A stretch of DNA of 18,204 nucleotides from Octopus sinensis. Lineage: Eukaryota. Both the position numbers and the translations under genes were made by a program. This document shows positions 1,293-18,204 of this stretch, in pieces. The stretch lies in the NCBI RefSeq assembly GCF_006345805.1, contig NW_021824536.1:1-18204 (forward strand). The letters run 5' to 3'. Position 1 is the stretch's first letter. Each line of letters starts with the position of its first letter. The notes beneath the pieces were generated by a model, which ran no database searches, was not told the origin of the DNA, and worked only from the letters and a program-made list of their open reading frames with translations.

Positions 1293-1506
1293 TCAGTTGT
1301 TGTCCACGCTCGAGTCCTCGTGGTAGTCGTTGGCTGTGGTTGGTGACGACGTGTCGCTGCTGTCTGAAGGACTGACGTTCTGAGTGTCCGTCGAAGACCG
1401 TCGGTCTTTCTTCGGCTGGTAGTCCGTAATCACCACCGTCACACTACCGACTGTCACTGACATGTGCGTGGCACTGCTCCGGTCAATGTTCTTTAACCGC
1501 GGTGGT
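1293..1506 (-). CDS. RYBP: Terminal coding exon of RYBP/YAF2 (RING1- and YY1-binding protein), C-terminal RING1/RAWUL-binding motif followed by a Ser-rich tail and TGA
   Basis: Translates (R)PPRLKNIDRSSATHMSVTVGSVTVVITDYQPKKDRRSS...DNN*, matching the remembered vertebrate RYBP/YAF2 motif PRLKNVDRS(T/S)AQ.L.VTVG..TVIITDFKEK. Acceptor ttctttgtttgtctttttgtacag|A CCA (phase 2); stop TGA at 1293-1295. Confidence 0.93.
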
Positions 1507-3802: not shown

Positions 3803-3928
3803 CTGTTGGCCCTCTTTGTCGAATTACTGCTGTGTTTCTCCTTTCTCATCTGACTCTTCTCTTTCTTCGGTGGTGGGGCAAACTGTTGAGAATTCTGTTG
3901 GGCGACATGAGTGTTCAGTCGCGGTTTT
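3803..3928 (-). CDS. RYBP: Penultimate RYBP/YAF2 exon, 126 nt, phase 2-2
   Basis: Translates KPRLNTHVAQQNSQQFAPPPKKEKSQMRKEKHSSNSTKRAN(R), homologous to RYBP [27 protein letters not shown]. Acceptor tttgtatttgtgtttttag|A, donor AG|gtaaat. AG+A splices in frame to the terminal exon (R-PPRLK). Confidence 0.9.
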
Positions 3929-4020: not shown

Positions 4021-4740
4021 CGCAGGAGTGGCTGTGTGGTAAGTAGCTTGCTTACCAACCACATGTTCCCGGGTTCAGTCCCACTGCGTGGCACCTTGGG
4101 CAAGTGTCTTCTACTATAGCCTCGGGCCAACCAAAGCCTTGTGAGTGGATTTGGTAGACGGAAACTGAAAGAAGACTGTCGTATATGTATATATATATAT
4201 ATCATCATCATCGTTTAACGTCCGCTTTCCTTGCTAGCATGGGTTGGACGGTTCAACTGGGGTCTGGCAAGCTCGAAGGCTGCACCAGGCCAGTCAGATC
4301 TGGCAGTGTTTCTACAGCTGGATGCCCTTCCTAACGCCAACCACTCCGAGAGTGTAGCGGGTGGTTTTATGTGCCACCGACACAGGTGCCAGACGAGGCT
4401 GGCAGACGGCCACGCTCGGATGGTGTTTTTTATGTGCCACCGACACAGGTGCCAGACGAGGCTGGCAGACGCCCACGCTCGGATGGTGTTTTCTTATGTG
4501 CTACCGACATATGTGTGTATGTGTGTGTGTTTGTGTGTCTGTGTTTGTCCCCCTAGCATTGCTTGACAACCGATGCTGGTGTGTTTACGTCCCCGTTACT
4601 TAGCGGTTCGGCAAAAGAGACCGATAGAATAAGTACTGGGCTTACAAAGAATAAGTCCTGGGGTCGATTTGCTCGACTAAAGGTGGTGCTCCAGCATGGC
4701 CGCAGTCAAATGACTGAAACAAGTAAAAGAGTAAAAGAGT
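4021..4740 (+). mobile_element. Composite SINE on + strand, interrupted in its microsatellite linker
   Basis: Head 4021-4180, 3' domain about 4510-4740 ending gtaaaagagtaaaagag. Confidence 0.85.
4201..4495 (-). mobile_element. RTE-type LINE 3' end or RTE-tail SINE with (ATG)n tail, nested in the SINE linker
   Basis: Reverse complement of the 8490-8698 and 15560-15746 family: catcatcgtttaacgtccgctttcc...ctggatgcccttcctaacgccaacc, with about 62-nt subrepeats. Confidence 0.75.
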
Positions 4741-5032: not shown

Positions 5033-5119
5033 GGGCTAAGAGAAGTACATTCGTCATCAGGGGAATCGGTCCACTCGTAGAGTTTGGCACTGGTAGGTGT
5101 CAGGTGTGACTTTCGTTTT
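5033..5119 (-). CDS. RYBP: Candidate RYBP cassette exon, 87 nt, phase 2-2 (KRKSHLTPTSAKLYEWTDSPDDECTSLS)
   Basis: Acceptor aaattgttttgttccag|A, donor CC|gtatgt. GC-richer island in AT-rich intron, open in the RYBP frame. No homology recognised. Confidence 0.6.
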
Positions 5120-5169: not shown

Positions 5170-5263
5170 TTGTGTGTATAAATGCACACACATACACACA
5201 CAATCACTTACATACAAATAGATGGACGCACACACACATACAATCACTTACATACAGACATAT

Positions 5264-5299
<36 letters not shown>

Positions 5300-5835
5300 A
5301 CAATCACTTACATACAGACATATGCACACACACACACACACACACGTACAATCACTTACATACAGACATATGCACACACACACACACACGTACAATCACT
5401 TACATACAGACATATGCACACACACACACACACAACACGTACAATCACTTACATACAAATAGACATACGCACACACACGTACAATCACTTACATACAGAC
5501 ATATGCACACACCACACACACACACACGTACAATCACTTACATACAGACATATGCACACACACACACGTACAATCACTTACATACAGACATATGCACACA
5601 CACACACACACGTACAATCACTTACATACAAATAGACATACGCACACACACGTACAATCACTTACATACAAATACACATACACACACACACGTACAATCA
5701 CTTACATACAGACATATGCACACACACACACACGTACAATCACTTACATACAAATAGACACACACACACACACGTATAGTCACTTACATACAAATAGACA
5801 TACACACACACATACATACAATCACTTACATACAG
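5170..5835. repeat. Minisatellite, 15 units of about 40-60 nt: cacgtacaatcacttacataca(g/a)a(c/t)a..(CA)n
   Basis: Core (a/g)tcacttacatac counted 15 times between about 5201 and 5832; spacing varies with (CA)n length. Confidence 0.9.
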
Positions 5836-6180
5836 ACATCCAAAAGATATATTCTTACATATATATAACGAGAGGATGAGAGAGAAAAACAGAAGCAAAC
5901 AGAGGGGGTCATTGCAATTTATGGACAGAACCTGATTGACAACCCCCCCTCTCCCCAGGGGCATAAAGAGGAATAAACTCACATATATAAACAGAGGAGG
6001 CGGCATGGAGTATATTCACACAAATAAACAGAGAGAATGAGGGAGATGTTAGGGTGTCTGATATCATATAAGTCAGGGCTGAACCAGAACCAGTACCACC
6101 AAATAGCGGCAGGGCCGAAACTGCTGTGCCGAAACGTCCCATTATGAGACCAAATGGCCTGAGATTGGGGAGCTACTCAC

Positions 6181-6267
6181 TTGATGATGCCGGATTCTTT
6201 ATCGTTCGATGTGTCAGTACATTCAGCTGGTTTCTCATTTGACATGCTTAAAGAGGATTTTTTGGGT
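6181..6267 (-). CDS. RYBP: Candidate RYBP cassette exon, 87 nt, phase 2-2 (PKKSSLSMSNEKPAECTDTSNDKESGII)
   Basis: Strong acceptor tttttttttcttctacag|A, strong donor AA|gtgagt, open in the RYBP frame. Confidence 0.7.
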
Positions 6268-6929: not shown

Positions 6930-7892
6930 GACCGGCCCGACACATGTGGTTCACAGCAACAGATAGGAGGAGAAGTGCATCCAATTCTGGTACCCCAGAG
7001 ATCAAGCGCTGACCGCCCGACACATATGTTTCACAGCAACAGATAGGAGGAGAAGTGCATCCAATTCTGGTACCCCAGAGATCAAGCGCTGACAGCCCGA
7101 CACATATGTTTCACAGCAACAGATAGGAGGAGAAGTGCATCCAATTCTGGTACCCCAGAGATCAAGCGCTGACAGCCCGACACATATGTTTCACAGCAAC
7201 AGATAGGAGGAGAAGTGCATCCAATTCTGGTACCCCAGAGATCAAGCGCTGACGGCCCGACACATATGTTTCACAGCAACAGATAGGAGGAGAAGTGCAT
7301 CCAATTCTGGTACCCCAGAGATCAAGCGCTGACCGCCCGACACATATGTTTCACAGCAACAGATAGGAGGAGAAGTGCATCCAATTCTGGTACCCCAGAG
7401 ATCAAGCGCTGACAGCCCGACACATATGTTTCACAGCAACAGATAGGAGGAGAAGTGCATCCAATTCTGGTACCCCCAGATCAAGCGCTGACGGCCCGAC
7501 ACATATGTTTCACAGCAACAGATAGGAGGAGAAGTGCATCCAATTCTGGTACCCCCCCAGATCAAGCGCTGACAGCCCGACACATATGTTTCACAGCAAC
7601 AGATAGGAGGAGAAGTGCATCCAATTCTGGTACCCCAACCGAGATCAAGCGCTGACAGCCCGACACATATGTTTCACAGCAACAGATAGGAGGAGAAGTG
7701 CATCCATTCTTGGTACCCCAGAGATCAAGCGCTGACGCCGACACATGGGTTCACAGCAACAGATAGGAGAAGAAGTGCATCCAATTCTGGTACCCCAGAG
7801 ATCAAGCGCTGACGGCCCAACACATATGTTTCACAGCAACAGATAGGAGGAGAAGTGCATCCAATTCTGGTACCCCAGAGATCAAGCGCTGA
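6930..7892. repeat. 80-nt tandem repeat, 12 near-identical copies
   Basis: agatagga anchor at 6961, 7041, 7121, 7201, 7281, 7361, 7441, 7520, 7601, 7684, 7761 and 7841; unit cacatatgtttcacagcaacagataggaggagaagtgcatccaattctggtaccccagagatcaagcgctgacNgcccga. Confidence 0.97.
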
Positions 7893-8317
7893 TGGAGCAG
7901 AAAACAGCCACCCAATGAACAAGCAGCTGCCACTGGCACCTAGACGAAAAGCAGCGGACTGAGCCCCCGTGCAATCACGGTGAGCATACATATCTATACA
8001 CTGGGCCTTCATCCATTGCGATCTTCCCTCTGTCCTACCCCATCGGCCCACTTATCCCCCTACCATTCCCAATGCCCTCTCATTTCTACCACCACCTCCC
8101 CGACTAACTATACCTCCATACCTCCCCCTTCTGAACTACTCCTGTATCTTTCACTCCAAAACACCCCACACTGGTAGTTCCTCACCATCCATGTCTCCAC
8201 CCTTGTTCATCACTCCCTACATTCACTACCACCCCTATCTTTAGCCATCTCTTACTCTCCCCTCACATCATCACTATCAGAATCATCATTTAACATCCGC
8301 TTTCCTGTTTGAGTGTG

Positions 8318-8698
8318 GCCATTGCCAGTACCCACAACATTCTCGGAGTGGTTGGCGTTAGGAAGGGCATCCAGCTGTAGAAACACTGCCAAATCAAGAT
8401 TGGAGCCTGGTGCAGCCACCTGGTTCGCCAGCCCTCAGTCAAAATCATCCAACTCATGGAAAGCGTGTAAAAAGATTCGAGCGAGGTTATTGCCAGTACC
8501 GCCTGACTGGCCCCTGTGCTGGTGGCACGTAAAAAGCACCCACTACACTCTCGGAGTGGTTGGCGTTAGGAAGGGCATCCAGCTGTAGAAACTCTGCCAG
8601 ATCAAGATTGGAGCCTGGTGCAGCCATCTGGTTCGCCAGCCCTCAGTCAAAATCGTCCAACCCATGCTAGCATGGAAAGCGGACGTTAAACGATGATG
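8318..8698 (+). mobile_element. Two adjacent copies of the RTE-type 3' tail, the second ending aaacgatgatg
   Basis: tctcggagtggttggcgttaggaagggcatccagctgtagaaac occurs at about 8341 and about 8549. Confidence 0.75.
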
Positions 8699-9597: not shown

Positions 9598-9642
9598 CTG
9601 TCTTTTGTAGTTGCAGATTTTTTTGTCTCTGGATTTTCTTTT
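9598..9642 (-). CDS. RYBP: Candidate RYBP small exon, 45 nt, phase 2-2 (KENPETKKSATTKD)
   Basis: Acceptor tttctctcctcctctccatccacag|A, consensus donor CAG|gtgagt, open in the RYBP frame, Lys-rich like RYBP linkers. Confidence 0.65.
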
Positions 9643-9846: not shown

Positions 9847-10436
9847 TTGGGTTGTCCGGAAAGTTTGTGCCGATTTTTAAAGGAAAGAAAAAGGTCAATA
9901 AATAGTTGCCATTACATTTTTAATCAACCAAATATGAACCATTTTGTTGCACAATGCGTCTCCATCTTTCCTTTAACTTGAAAAATACCCTCTTCCCAGA
10001 ATTGAGGTTGTTTCATGGCAAAGAATTCATCAAGGTATCTTTTTACGTCATCCAAAGAATTGAAATTTTTACCATTAAGACTATTCTGCAGAGACCTGGA
10101 TAAGTGGAAATCCGAAGGAGCAATATCTGGTGAATATGGAGGGTGGGGTAACACATCCCAGCCGAGCTGCAGCAATTTTTGTCTGGTTCCCGAAGCATCA
10201 AATGCCGAAAATGAACTTTCTTATCTTCCATTTTAAAGGGTTACAGAATTAACACAGGTTATAGGAACACAAACCTCCTTCCACGAAAATATAGCTTAAA
10301 CATGGATTTTCCTCTTCAGGTGCCAAGCCCACTGATGGTGATGTAGTCAAATCCTATCTTATGGTCTCGACCATGTTCTAAAATAAGTCGAAAGGTAAGC
10401 TACTATAAATTGGCACAAACTTTCCGGACAACCCAA
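9847..10436 (-). mobile_element. Internally deleted mariner (Tc1/mariner) element, 590 bp
   Basis: 30-bp TIRs 9847-9876 and 10407-10436 (29/30 identical), TA at 9845-9846. Minus strand encodes the N-terminus MEDKKVHFRHLML fused out of frame to the C-terminal transposase LLQLGWDVLPHPPYSPDIAPSDFHL (YSPDLAP motif). Confidence 0.92.
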
Positions 10437-10681: not shown

Positions 10682-10853
10682 GAGTGGCTGTGTGGTAAGT
10701 AGCTTGTTTACCAACCACATGGTTCCGGGTTCAGTCCCACTGTGTGGCACCTTGGGCAAGTGTCTTCTACTATAGCCTTGGACCGACCAAAGCCTTGTGA
10801 GTGGATTTGGTAGACGGAAACTGAAAGAAGCCTGTCGTATATATGTATATATA

Positions 10854-10886
<33 letters not shown>

Positions 10887-11049
10887 AGGCGCAGGAGTGG
10901 CTGTGTGGTAAGTAGCTTGCTTACCAACCACATGGTTCTGGGTTCAGTCCCATTGCATGGCACCTTGGGCAAGTGTCTTCTACTATAGCCTCGGACCGAC
11001 CAAAGCCTTGTGAGTGGATTTGGTAGACGGAAACTGAAAGAAGCCCGTC

Positions 11050-11090
<41 letters not shown>

Positions 11091-13861: not shown

Positions 13862-14409
13862 TCATACCTCGTTCAGAGATTTATTATTGCTTATATAATA
13901 TATATATATTATATATATATAACACACACACACACACGCATATATACATATTCATGTATATACATACTTACACACACACACACATAAATAAACATATATA
14001 TATACCTAAACACATATACAGACATAAACATACATAAATATATATGATAAAGAGTAGCAGACTGGTGGAGATACACTACACAGCCAATTAGGGGACATCT
14101 AGGCAAGCTGTGACAAAGACCGAGACAAAGGGACAGGGGACAGACTCTCCAAGAAACAAGGTGTCTGACAAACAGACAGACAGACAGGAACAATACAAAA
14201 ACAAACGTGAACTGACAGCAGGACAGTAATGAGGGATTGTGATCCTAACGAGGCAAAGGGGGACATCACTGGATAAATGTGGACGGGGGGGACGCATAAG
14301 TGGACACTGATTTTGACAAGTGGACAGGAGGTACTTGTTGATAGGCATGCTGCAAGAAAGGGGGAGGCGGCACAGGTGGACACTGAGACTGACAGGAGGA
14401 CGGGGTAGA

Positions 14410-14824
14410 TAGGTGGACAGTAATGCTGACAAGTGGACAGGAGGTACATGCAGACGGTGATGTGGACAGGAAGGGAGACACAGGTGGACAGTGATGCTGA
14501 CAAGTGGACAGGAGGTACATGCAGACGGTGATGTGGACAGGAAGGGAGACACAGGTGGAGAGTGATGCTGACAAGTGGACAGGAGGTACATGCAGACGGT
14601 GATGTGGACAGGAAGGGAGACACAGGTGGAGAGTGATGCTGACAAGTGGACAGGAAGTACATGCAGACGGTGATGTGGACAGGAAGGGAGACACAGGTGG
14701 ACAGTGATGCTGACAAGTGGACAGGAGGTACATGCAGACGGTGATGCGGACAGGAAGAGAGACACAGGTGGACAGGAGGTACATGCAGACGGTGATGTGG
14801 ACAGGAAGGGAGACACAGGTGGAC
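14410..14824. repeat. 71-nt tandem repeat (about 4.5 full units plus two shortened units)
   Basis: gacaagtggac anchors at 14428, 14499, 14570, 14641 and 14712; degenerate related motifs extend to about 14270. Confidence 0.92.
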
Positions 14825-14861
14825 CAACAACAAAAGAGAGAAGATATTGAGGAGGAAGTAC

Positions 14862-14957
14862 CGTTTTGTGTGGTGGTCACCATCTCGCAGGGAGCCGGAA
14901 TACAGGGACTGGTTGAGATGGGGACTCGGTGGTGAATAGCTTAGAGCAGGACTATGT
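14862..14957 (-). CDS. RYBP: Candidate RYBP cassette exon, 96 nt, phase 2-2 (HSPALSYSPPSPHLNQSLYSGSLRDGDHHTK)
   Basis: Strong acceptor tctctttcttctctccatttcag|A; donor CG|gtactt is weak. Open in the RYBP frame. Confidence 0.55.
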
Positions 14958-15094
14958 CTGAAATGGAGAGAAGAAAGAGATCAGAGTTGAAGCAGGACAT
15001 AATGGAACACAACACCACGGCTGGTGCAGATGTATATAGCGTTGTTATATACACATGAACATCGAAATAAATATCAAATGGAAACAGCAGTTGT

Positions 15095-15746
15095 GATACC
15101 TGTGCCGATGGCACGTAAAAATCACCATCCGAACATGGCCGTTGCCAGCCTTGAATGGCTTCTGTGCCGGTGACACGTAAAAAGCACCATCCGAACGTGG
15201 CCGATGCCAGTGCCGCCTTGACTGGTTTCTGTGCCGGTGGCACATAAAAAGCACCATCCGAACGTGGCCAATGCCAGACTCCCCTGGCTTCTGTGCCGGT
15301 GGAACGTAAAAAGCACCACCCAAACATGGCCGATGCCAGCGCCGCCTCGACTGGCTTCTGTACCGGTGGCACGTAAAAAAAGCACCATCTGAACGTGACC
15401 GATGCCAGTGCTGCCTCGACTGGCTTCTGTGCCGGTGGCACATAAAAAGCACCATCCGAATGTGGCCGATGCCAGCGCCGCCTTAACTGGCTTCTGTGCC
15501 TGCGGCACGTAAAAAGCACCAACCGATCGTGACCGCTGCTAGTCTCCCCTGGCACCTGTGCTGGTGGCACGTAAAAAGCACCCACTACACTCACGGAGTA
15601 GTTGGCGTTAGGAAGGGCATCCAGCTGTAGAAACACTGCCAGATCAGACTGGAGCCTGGTGCAGCCTATTGGGTTCCCAGTCCTCAGTCAAATCGTCCAA
15701 CCCATGCTAGCACGGAAAATGGACATTAAACGATGATGATGATGAT
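15095..15746 (+). mobile_element. RTE-type 3' end with 8 tandem 62-69-nt subrepeats and (ATG)n tail
   Basis: aaaa(g/t)cacc anchors at about 15122, 15184, 15251, 15313, 15382, 15449, 15516 and 15578, followed by the family tail. Confidence 0.8.
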
Positions 15747-15789: not shown

Positions 15790-16231
15790 TAGGCAAAAGG
15801 CTTGAAATTTTGCAGAGTCAATTACATCAACCCCAGTACGCAACTGGTACTCATTTTATCAACCCCAAAAGGATGAAAGCATAAATCGACCTTGGCAGAA
15901 TTTGAACTCAGAACGTAAAGATGGACAAAATGTCACTAAGCGTTTTACCCAGCGTGCTAACAACTCTGCCAGCTCACTGCTTTATATTGCAACAAAAACA
16001 ACAAGAATAATAATAGTTTCAAATTTTGCCACAAGGGCAGCAATTTTGGGGGAGGAGAGGGGTCGATTACATTGACCTCACTTTTCAACTGGTACTTATT
16101 TTGTTGACCCCAAAAGGATGAAAGGAAAAGTCGACCTTGGTGGAATTTGAACTCAGAACATAGCGGCAAGCAAAATATTGCTAAGCATTTTGCCTGAAGT
16201 GCTAACAATTCTGCCACCTTTCTGCCTTAAC

Positions 16232-16264
<33 letters not shown>

Positions 16265-16430
16265 CCTTTCTATTATAGACACAAGGCCTGAAACTTGGGG
16301 GGAAGGGGATGAGTCGATCACATCGACCCCCAGTAGGCAACTGGTACTTAAATAATCAACCCCGAAAGGATGAAAGGTAAATTTGACCTTGGTGGAATTT
16401 GAACTCAAAATGTAAAGACAGGAGAAATAC
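15790..16430 (-). mobile_element. Three consecutive diverged copies of a third tRNA-derived SINE family (central tttcatccttt.ggggt.gataaaat.agtaccagttg domain, Meta-SINE-like from memory)
   Basis: Copies at about 15795-15980, 16012-16225 and 16262-16430, separated by (AAC)/(AAT)n; B box gagttcaaattc in each. Confidence 0.7.
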
Positions 16431-16616: not shown

Positions 16617-16735
16617 TCATCATCATCATCGTTTAGCGTCCGCTTTCCATGCTAGCATGGGTTGGACGGTTCAGCTGGGGTCTGGGAAGCCAGATGGCTG
16701 CACCAGGCTCCAGTCTGATCTGGCAATGTTTCTTC
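16617..16735 (-). mobile_element. Truncated RTE-type 3' tail
   Basis: catcatcatcgtttagcgtccgctttccatgctagcatgggttggacgg. Confidence 0.7.
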
Positions 16736-16817
16736 TACCATAAAGACTTGTGCCTTGGATGGGAACTTTCTAGATGCAATCCCCTAGTCACTCATGATCG
16801 AATGGAGTCTCCACATA

Positions 16818-17911
16818 TACTTTTACTTGTTCCAGTCATTTGATTGTGGCCATGCTGGAGCACCGCCTTTAATCAAGCAACTCGACCCTGGGACTTATTC
16901 TTTGTAAGCCCAGTCCTTATTCTATCGGTCTCTTTTTGCCGAACCGCTAAGTGACGGGGACGTAAACACACCAGCATCGGTTGTCAAGCGATGCTAGGGG
17001 GACAAACACAGACACACAAACACACACATATATATATATATACATATATACGACAGGCTTCTTTCAGTTTCCGTCTACCAAATCAAGGCATTGGTCGGCC
17101 CGGGGCTAATGCTATAGCAGAAGACACTTGCCCAAGATGCCACAGCCAGTGGGACTGAACCCGGAACTATGTGGTTGGTTAGCAAGCTACTTACCACACA
17201 GCCACTCCTGCGCCTATGTATATACATATATACGACGGGCTTCTTTCAGTTTCCGTCTACCAAATCAAGGCATTGGTCGGCCCGGGGCTATAGCAGAAGA
17301 CACTTGCCCAAGATGCCACGCAGTGGGACTGAACCCGGAACTATGTGGTTGGTTAGCAAGCTACTTACCACACAGCCACTCCTGCGCCTATGTATATACA
17401 TATATACGACGGGCTTCTTTCAGTTTCCGTCTACCAAATCAAGGCATTGGTCGGCCCGGGGCTATAGCAGAAGACACTTGCCCAAGATGCCACGCAGTGG
17501 GACTGAACCCGGAACTATGTGGTTGGTTAGCAAGCTACTTACCACACAGCCACTCCTGCGCCTATGTATATACATATATACGACGGGCTTCTTTCAGTTT
17601 CCGTCTACCAAATCAAGGCATTGGTCGGCCCGGGGCTATAGCAGAAGACACTTGCCAAGATGCCACGCAGTGGGACTGAACCCGGAACTATGGTGGTTGG
17701 TTAGCAAGCTACTTACCACACAGCCACTCCTGCGCCTATGTATATACATATATACGACGGGCTTCTTTCAGTTTCCGTCTACCAAATCAAGGCATTGGTC
17801 GGCCCGGGGCTATAGCAGAAGACACTTGCCCAAGATGCCACGCAGTGGGACTGAACCCGGAACTATGTGGTTGGTTAGCAAGCTACTTACCACACAGCCA
17901 CTCCTGCGCCT
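16818..17911 (-). mobile_element. Composite SINE whose head is tandemly amplified x5 (174-nt period)
   Basis: 3' domain 16818-17030; heads start at 17051, 17233, 17407, 17581 and 17755. Confidence 0.92.
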
Positions 17912-18204
17912 ATATATATATATATAAATTTGAAATGGGCGACTCTTGTCTTGGGATTCACGGTCAAACGGCTGGATGGAATTGCGCGAAAAATTACATG
18001 GATGTGTAGAATGATCCGGTGGTGATGCTGGGCTTTGTATTTTTTCATAGCTCCCATGGTTACTGAGATAATCTACTATAATAATACTCTTGTGTTTATG
18101 AATGAGAAAGGAAGGGGTGATAGATGAATAAGGAAGGAGGGAATGATGTCATACTTGGTAGTGGGATGATGAAAATTGTACACTGAAAAATAAATCAAAC
18201 AGCG

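Follow-up and report, generated by a model that had tools for sequence, protein, structure and literature searches.

A UGCAUG-bearing intronic minisatellite beside a conserved candidate exon of an octopus YAF2/RYBP gene: a possible RBFOX-dependent splicing enhancer

On the minus strand of an 18,204-nt stretch of Octopus sinensis DNA (contig NW_021824536.1; this whole stretch is referred to below as the window) a tandem array with one UGCAUG in each unit follows a candidate 96-nt exon of a YAF2/RYBP gene. We tentatively propose that the array acts as an RBFOX-dependent intronic enhancer of this exon, borne by a minisatellite, which we hold to be quite possible though short of probable. It is the best-supported functional reading because of the literature on UGCAUG and because an RBFOX homologue is expressed in the nervous tissue of Octopus vulgaris (PMC5736919).

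RBFOX proteins recognise (U)GCAUG, and their sites in the downstream intron enhance exon inclusion (PMC2777236). Multiple copies of UGCAUG are common, more copies give a stronger effect, and the classic repeated UGCAUG elements are found downstream of fibronectin EIIIB and of NMHC-B N30 (PMC2777236). The preliminary description of this DNA had stated that RBFOX binding downstream of an alternative exon typically promotes inclusion; for multi-copy UGCAUG in this position the same paper provides the backing, and it describes the enhancement as dependent on position. At weak donors the recruitment of U1 is aided by RBFOX, according to two further papers (PMC10514471, PMC13158602).

The YAF2/RYBP gene

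Judged by homology, the minus-strand gene is a YAF2/RYBP homologue, in agreement with the RYBP gene named in the preliminary description. The coding part of its last exon (1293..1506), which ends with the stop codon, contains the C-terminal RING1-binding motif of YAF2/RYBP (Pfam PF17219; E 1.4e-19, 69.7 bits, cut-off 22.4) and is 100% identical at the protein level to a 188-aa O. bimaculoides protein annotated as 'YY1-associated factor 2-like' (P0009). Five exons of the window are matched by the spliced cuttlefish RYBP protein P0008/P0066. P0008, with 310 aa encoded by a transcript contig of 1066 nt, was found via a hypothetical spliced protein query, and its 90% cluster includes 'RYBP [Acanthosepion pharaonis]'. 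The internal exons that P0008 matches, all on the minus strand, are Ea (9598..9642, 45 nt, KENPETKKSATTKD, donor CAG/gtgagt, the slash marking the splice site; 0/45 differences from O. bimaculoides), Eb (6181..6267, 87 nt; 1/87 differences from O. bimaculoides), Ec (5033..5119, 87 nt, KRKSHLTPTSAKLYEWTDSPDDECTSLS) and Ed (3803..3928, 126 nt, KPRLNTHVAQQ...). Ea, Eb and Ec are thereby validated by spliced cuttlefish RYBP mRNA. Ed also matches human RYBP, where this segment comes straight after the zinc finger, as it does in other animals.

Every intron in this gene region interrupts a codon between its second and third base, and the internal exons all have lengths of 3n. A search for the RanBP2-type zinc finger gave no match anywhere in the window; the finger (PF00641) is present in the orthologous cuttlefish mRNA P0008, and the zinc-finger exon must lie upstream of position 18204. 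Downstream of the stop codon, positions 1-440 are G-rich and of low complexity, with runs of GTA/TGG triplets, and read on the minus strand they are rich in T, H and P; presumably this is 3' UTR or intergenic DNA.

The O. bimaculoides model P0009 appears from its sequence to be truncated or mis-built, since the zinc finger and all middle exons are missing from it. It is also without the candidate exon, and its N-terminal 117 aa look repeat- or intron-derived.

In non-cephalopod molluscs the segment GTSTRKPR... is unbroken (P0010, P0011, P0013), and a distant mollusc locus (L001) has a compact gene in which an intron of 560 nt leads from the zinc-finger exon to the KPKIN exon, which corresponds to Ed, as against more than 14 kb in the window. 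On these two grounds it seems that several symmetric exons were added to this single YAF2/RYBP intron in cephalopods. Ea, Eb and Ec (45, 87 and 87 nt) are absent from gastropod, bivalve and vertebrate proteins, and L001, having no equivalent of the candidate exon or of the array, tells nothing about the latter. One TGCATG was seen in L001 (9085-9095) about 45 nt upstream of the KPKIN exon, ~0.14 being expected in a 560-nt intron.

The cuttlefish isoforms P0008 and P0066/P0067 differ by an 8-aa insert, FHDTTITR (24 nt), which directly adjoins the end of the zinc-finger exon and has the look of an alternative microexon. Because the transcripts differ by this insert, the gene region can be regarded as alternatively spliced in a cephalopod. 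A counterpart of the 24-nt microexon was found nowhere in the window.

The tandem array and its motifs

The array (14411..14824, minus strand) was delimited with Tandem Repeats Finder, a unit listing and the base composition. Tandem Repeats Finder reported a period of 71 at 14411-14775 (5.1 copies with 97% matches), overlapped by a period of 51 at 14713-14824. In minus-strand orientation a 51-nt unit is followed by five 71-nt units and a degenerate tail to ~14270, so that the array described earlier is confirmed but its count of six 71-nt units becomes five plus a 51-nt one. The 51-nt unit is the 71-nt unit minus a 20-nt sub-repeat, and sub-repeats of 20-29 nt, starting with CTGTCCAC, make up each unit. 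The tandem structure is certainly beyond chance, and with its head-to-tail units of 71 nt and the 51-nt variant the array falls within the unit range of a minisatellite (~10-100 nt). Numbered from the putative donor G at 14861, it starts at ~+38 to +40 of the intron, with the first unit from 14822 (+40), as the preliminary description had it (~38 nt into the intron). The degenerate older copies at 14270..14410 (minus strand) contain one GCATG (AGCATGCC, G at 14350, +512).

Pyrimidines make up 73% of the array's transcribed strand. All three frames stay open across the array because the strand is poor in A, not because it is coding, 71 being no multiple of 3; a protein search of 5.8 billion clusters with the open frame spanning exon and array gave 0 matches. 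Array unit and candidate exon are each single-copy in the 18-kb window, and to this extent a dispersed-repeat or transposon origin was rejected.

Nine arrays with a period of at least 20, the 71-nt array included, occupy 28% of the window, so that an array beside an exon is not remarkable in itself. Among the nine, only the 71-nt array adjoins a conserved exon. The other eight, with periods of 40-245, are found at 6935-7892, 5185-5839, 15100-15582, 17033-17926, 1865-2469, 10682-11087, 15815-16420 and 4365-4509; several consist of SINE-like units with (AC)n(AT)n at their ends, and an 80-nt x 12 array (95% matches) is the largest in the window. Another dispersed repeat has copies at 4219-4563, 8255-8667, 14944-15687 and 16637-16740, the translations of which have ...DLAVFLQLDALPNANHSE... 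in common; some of this repeat is arranged in 63-67-nt tandem arrays, and one copy of this type ends ~140 nt upstream of the candidate exon's acceptor. At 9927-10220 (minus strand) an open frame reads ...PHPPYSPDIAPSDFHLSRSLQNSL..., which resembles the C-terminal part of mariner-type transposases; it had 0 matches in Pfam at E <= 0.01, and the neighbouring repeat ORFs gave nothing relevant in Pfam.

The minus strand of the array contains six TGCATG, one per unit as had been noted before, and the plus strand contains none. They are located at 14782..14787 (+75), 14731..14736 (+126), 14660..14665 (+197), 14589..14594 (+268), 14518..14523 (+339) and 14447..14452 (+410), that is on the transcribed strand and at most a few hundred nt past the exon. 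The GCATG at +512 is one further copy past the six on this strand. Elsewhere on the minus strand TGCATG occurs 4 times in the 17.8 kb outside the array, and among the nine arrays of the window only this one has ~1 TGCATG per unit on the transcribed strand; the SINE-derived array at 1865-2469 has ~0.4 per unit. When the unit was shuffled, TGCATG was present in 5% of dinucleotide-preserving and 0.8% of mononucleotide shuffles. One TGCATG per unit is a single mildly unlikely event that was then multiplied by duplication; the six are not six independent events, because one motif was copied.

For YCAY the outcome was different. The preliminary description had counted about 5 per unit and spoken of a loading with NOVA motifs. 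The count holds (27 in 414 nt, or 4.6 per 71 nt; 6 per circularised unit), and the density is 4 times the window average. Mononucleotide shuffles, with an expectation of 2.2 +/- 1.3, are exceeded by the 6 observed, but dinucleotide-preserving shuffles of the unit yield 6.2 +/- 1.2, so that YCAY is not clustered above base composition. Since the count matches this expectation, the NOVA 'loading' is the pyrimidine-rich composition; nothing points to NOVA specifically, and this part of the original idea is dropped. The classical PTB motifs UCUU and CUCUCU occur at 0.3 per unit in the array, under the window background.

The array in Octopus bimaculoides

The orthologous locus of O. bimaculoides (LGKD02014783.1, L003) was found through P0009. 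Its mean identity to the window is 84%, with ~90% in clean segments. The orthologous 71-nt array (L003 1198-1408, 3.0 copies, 97% matches) is cut by an assembly gap (L003 1409-1912), which blurs the copy-number difference in a comparison of one sequence per species. It is to this between-species difference that the terms VNTR and copy-number-tunable of the preliminary description would refer. The consensus units of the two species differ at 4 of 71 positions and both contain TGCATG. Between donor and array O. bimaculoides has ~620 nt of decayed repeat copies that the window is without, and the homology of the two introns stops at ~+38, where the array of the window begins.

The ~820 nt that follow the exon in O. 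bimaculoides contain 9 GCATG, beginning at +42, and TGCATG makes up 6 of the 9. Of the motif conservation in the orthologous intron, which the preliminary description had named as a check, this much was seen: GCATG-rich repeats follow the exon in both species, with very different architecture, and none of the GCATG positions is orthologous between the two close species compared. The 626-nt decayed part has six GCATG, whereas 0.6 are expected from shuffles, and in retention within the decayed copies GCATG ranks 5 of 63 consensus 5-mers (normalised for consensus multiplicity). This is a hint from sequence that GCATG was preferentially retained there, and it is not proof of selection because all copies share descent. 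The older copies carry two GCATG per unit (TCAGCATGAC, TCTGCATGT); the amplified unit keeps one of the two, which argues against selection for maximum motif number.

The same data also fit neutral turnover, because the homology ends at ~+38 and the ~620 nt of decayed repeats are present only in O. bimaculoides. The exon would be real and the array one of many intronic minisatellites, its motifs a by-product of pyrimidine-rich amplification that would not affect splicing to any relevant degree, and this main rival too we regard as a serious possibility without calling it probable. It would explain an array structure grossly different between Octopus species, in a window more than a quarter of which is tandem repeat, a YCAY content at the dinucleotide expectation, a TGCATG that arises in one of twenty unit shuffles and the loss of the second GCATG from the amplified unit. 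The 97% identity of the units indicates a recent expansion and agrees with it. Only five sites vary among the units; two fall within YCAY, while TGCATG is invariant, and with so few substitutions the unit comparison has no power to detect constraint. We also counted against the enhancer that the motifs of many other RNA-binding proteins might have drawn attention in its place. What neutral turnover leaves aside is that six perfect UGCAUG within 410 nt after a weak-donor exon are an arrangement known to recruit RBFOX in a dose-dependent manner (PMC2777236), that GCATG is dense downstream of the exon in both species despite the restructuring, and that it is among the best-retained words of the decayed copies.

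The candidate exon

The candidate exon (14862..14957, minus strand, 96 nt) is placed between the zinc-finger exon, which is outside the window, and Ea. Its translation is (R)HSPALSYSPPSPHLNQSLYSGSLRDGDHHTK(R), the codon at either edge being divided 2+1; its length is 3n, and just one frame is open, which is that required by the intron phase of the gene. The acceptor ttctctccatttcag/ is strong, with 17/18 pyrimidines at -22..-5 of the polypyrimidine tract that precedes the CAG (acceptor side 14958..14991). The donor ACG/GTACTTCCTCCTCA (first 14 intron bases 14848..14861), identical in O. bimaculoides, is weak, as had been stated before: ACG/gtactt scores -0.84 bits on a rough matrix of approximate human frequencies, on which Ea, Eb and Ed score 4.9-8.6 bits and the validated exon Ec -0.78.

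In O. bimaculoides the exon is identical at 96/96 positions (L003 476-571). It belongs to a 144-nt exact run common to both species (14991-14848), made up of the exon, 34 nt upstream and 14 nt downstream, which is the longest exact match in the two-species alignment; the next in length, at 79, 69 and 69 nt, correspond to Ee, Ea and Eb, all of them validated exons. The expected number of runs of at least 144 nt is ~0.01 or fewer at a background identity of 93% and ~1e-8 at 84%. The exon proposed in the preliminary description is therefore upheld to the extent that the block is, from its conservation and phase, very probably constrained and frame-compatible, and we consider it likely that it is a real exon under constraint.

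A chance pseudo-exon was first suggested, since two better-scoring 'pseudo-exons' shared the intron. It was rejected because both of these are exons of the cuttlefish mRNA and the candidate is the most conserved block of the locus.

It is unlikely that the 144-nt block is not an mRNA exon but has a constrained non-coding role (an enhancer, for example, or a small RNA, or a piece of some other transcript), which would leave the array without an exon to regulate. The peptide is absent from all proteins and transcripts in the collections searched, and the cephalopod mRNAs found, those of cuttlefish, are without the exon; together with the weak donor this would suit such an element. Yet the block has a strong polypyrimidine-CAG at one edge and a GT at the other, a length of 3n and as its single open frame the one that the gene needs, every other long exact run of the locus is an exon, and the poor donor score is shared by the validated exon Ec. 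A structured RNA or miRNA hairpin was ruled out, since the block folds no better than its shuffles (z of -0.70 for the minus and +0.42 for the plus strand) and Rfam gave 0 matches for the whole window. When metagenome contigs were scanned for exact matches to 38 nt of the candidate exon, there were likewise 0. At the position of the candidate exon the cuttlefish mRNAs have a different exon of 84 nt (SLGQVLQAQKTIWERQASPKLMTTVHA), for which no convincing homology with the candidate was found at either the protein or the DNA level.

The first 14 intron bases, GTACTTCCTCCTCA, match the segment GTACTTCCTGTCCA of the repeat unit at 11/14 positions (P ~0.02), and it may be that the donor descends from an old copy of the repeat. 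Every unit contains a donor-like CAT/GTACCT that overlaps TGCATG, and the GTAC(C/T)T in each unit resembles the real donor. That the array affects splicing by some property other than UGCAUG (PTB, PCBP or hnRNP K on C/U tracts, NOVA on YCAY, decoy donors of the type CAU/GUACCU, or length, possibly with repression or cryptic sites as the outcome) is improbable: the 73% pyrimidine content with CUCCCUUCCUGUCC in every unit, the fourfold YCAY density, the donor-like words and the example of the ABCA7 VNTR, which abuts a donor and the length of which is correlated with how often the downstream exon is skipped (PMC5954066), speak for it, and against it are the scarcity of classical PTB motifs, a YCAY content not beyond dinucleotide composition and pseudo-donors that score under the real donor in our rough scoring.

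Proposed mechanism

For the RBFOX-dependent enhancer we envisage the following sequence of events. A young minisatellite, variable between species, would have arisen by slippage or unequal exchange in a large YAF2/RYBP intron, ~38 nt after a conserved exon with a weak donor, and would be a carrier of motifs, not a designed element. Because each unit carries one UGCAUG, the pre-mRNA would have six RBFOX sites, from +75 to +410. Where RBFOX is expressed, in neurons and muscle, it would bind the cluster and help U1 to use the weak donor, and better use of this donor would raise the inclusion of the 96-nt exon. We infer that the exon is spliced into mRNA and used alternatively, and that binding of RBFOX, if it occurs, acts in the direction of inclusion.

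A more far-reaching version, in which the exon was born in the octopus lineage beside the minisatellite with a donor possibly derived from the repeat, and in which the rapidly changing number of RBFOX sites sets inclusion, so that copy number would be an evolvable dial, perhaps a polymorphic one, on how a chromatin regulator is spliced in neurons, appears to us unlikely.

If RBFOX reads the array, a tandem repeat would have created a multi-site splicing enhancer for a lineage-specific cephalopod exon. The unusual repeat content of octopus genomes would then be linked to the growth of neural splicing programmes, and a PRC1 cofactor would acquire a variable S/P-rich insert directly behind its zinc finger. 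Independent of the array, a corrected gene model results, with several symmetric exons gained by cephalopods in one intron, one of which is perfectly conserved in two Octopus species and missing from P0009.

Comparison with known systems

The array has much in common with ordinary octopus intronic minisatellites: a unit length of tens of nt, high unit identity, a sub-repeat structure, an architecture that differs in the congener and an assembly gap at the array. It differs from them in having ~1 TGCATG per unit on the transcribed strand and in adjoining a conserved exon, a combination unique among the arrays of the window.

With the YCAY-cluster enhancers of NOVA it shares a high density of YCAY downstream of an exon (4.6-6 per 71 nt), which in the octopus, however, equals what the dinucleotide composition gives (6 vs 6.2 +/- 1.2).

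The VNTR in intron 18 of ABCA7 (25-nt unit; PMC5954066) is, like the octopus array, an intronic minisatellite next to a donor. Both repeats carry predicted splicing-factor motifs, and for both it has been proposed that copy number tunes splicing. A further likeness is that the donor-proximal bases in the octopus may be derived from the repeat (P ~0.02). The ABCA7 array starts at the GT itself, whereas that of the octopus starts at ~+38. For ABCA7 the length polymorphism was measured and longer arrays lead to more skipping of the next exon; our proposal for the octopus concerns inclusion of the upstream exon.

The repeated-UGCAUG enhancers in the downstream intron of rat fibronectin EIIIB, at NMHC-B N30 and at exon 16 of protein 4.1R have, as found here, several copies on the transcribed strand downstream of a small exon, and here too the motif lies downstream of the exon in a second species. 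Those enhancers are dispersed, individually conserved hexamers, in contrast to the near-perfect 71-nt tandem repeat of the octopus, the motif positions of which are not orthologous between species and the RBFOX sites of which are putative. If functional, the array would be an enhancer of an already-known type, resembling the UGCAUG-repeat enhancers in its mechanism and the ABCA7 VNTR in its repeat-borne placement on the donor side.
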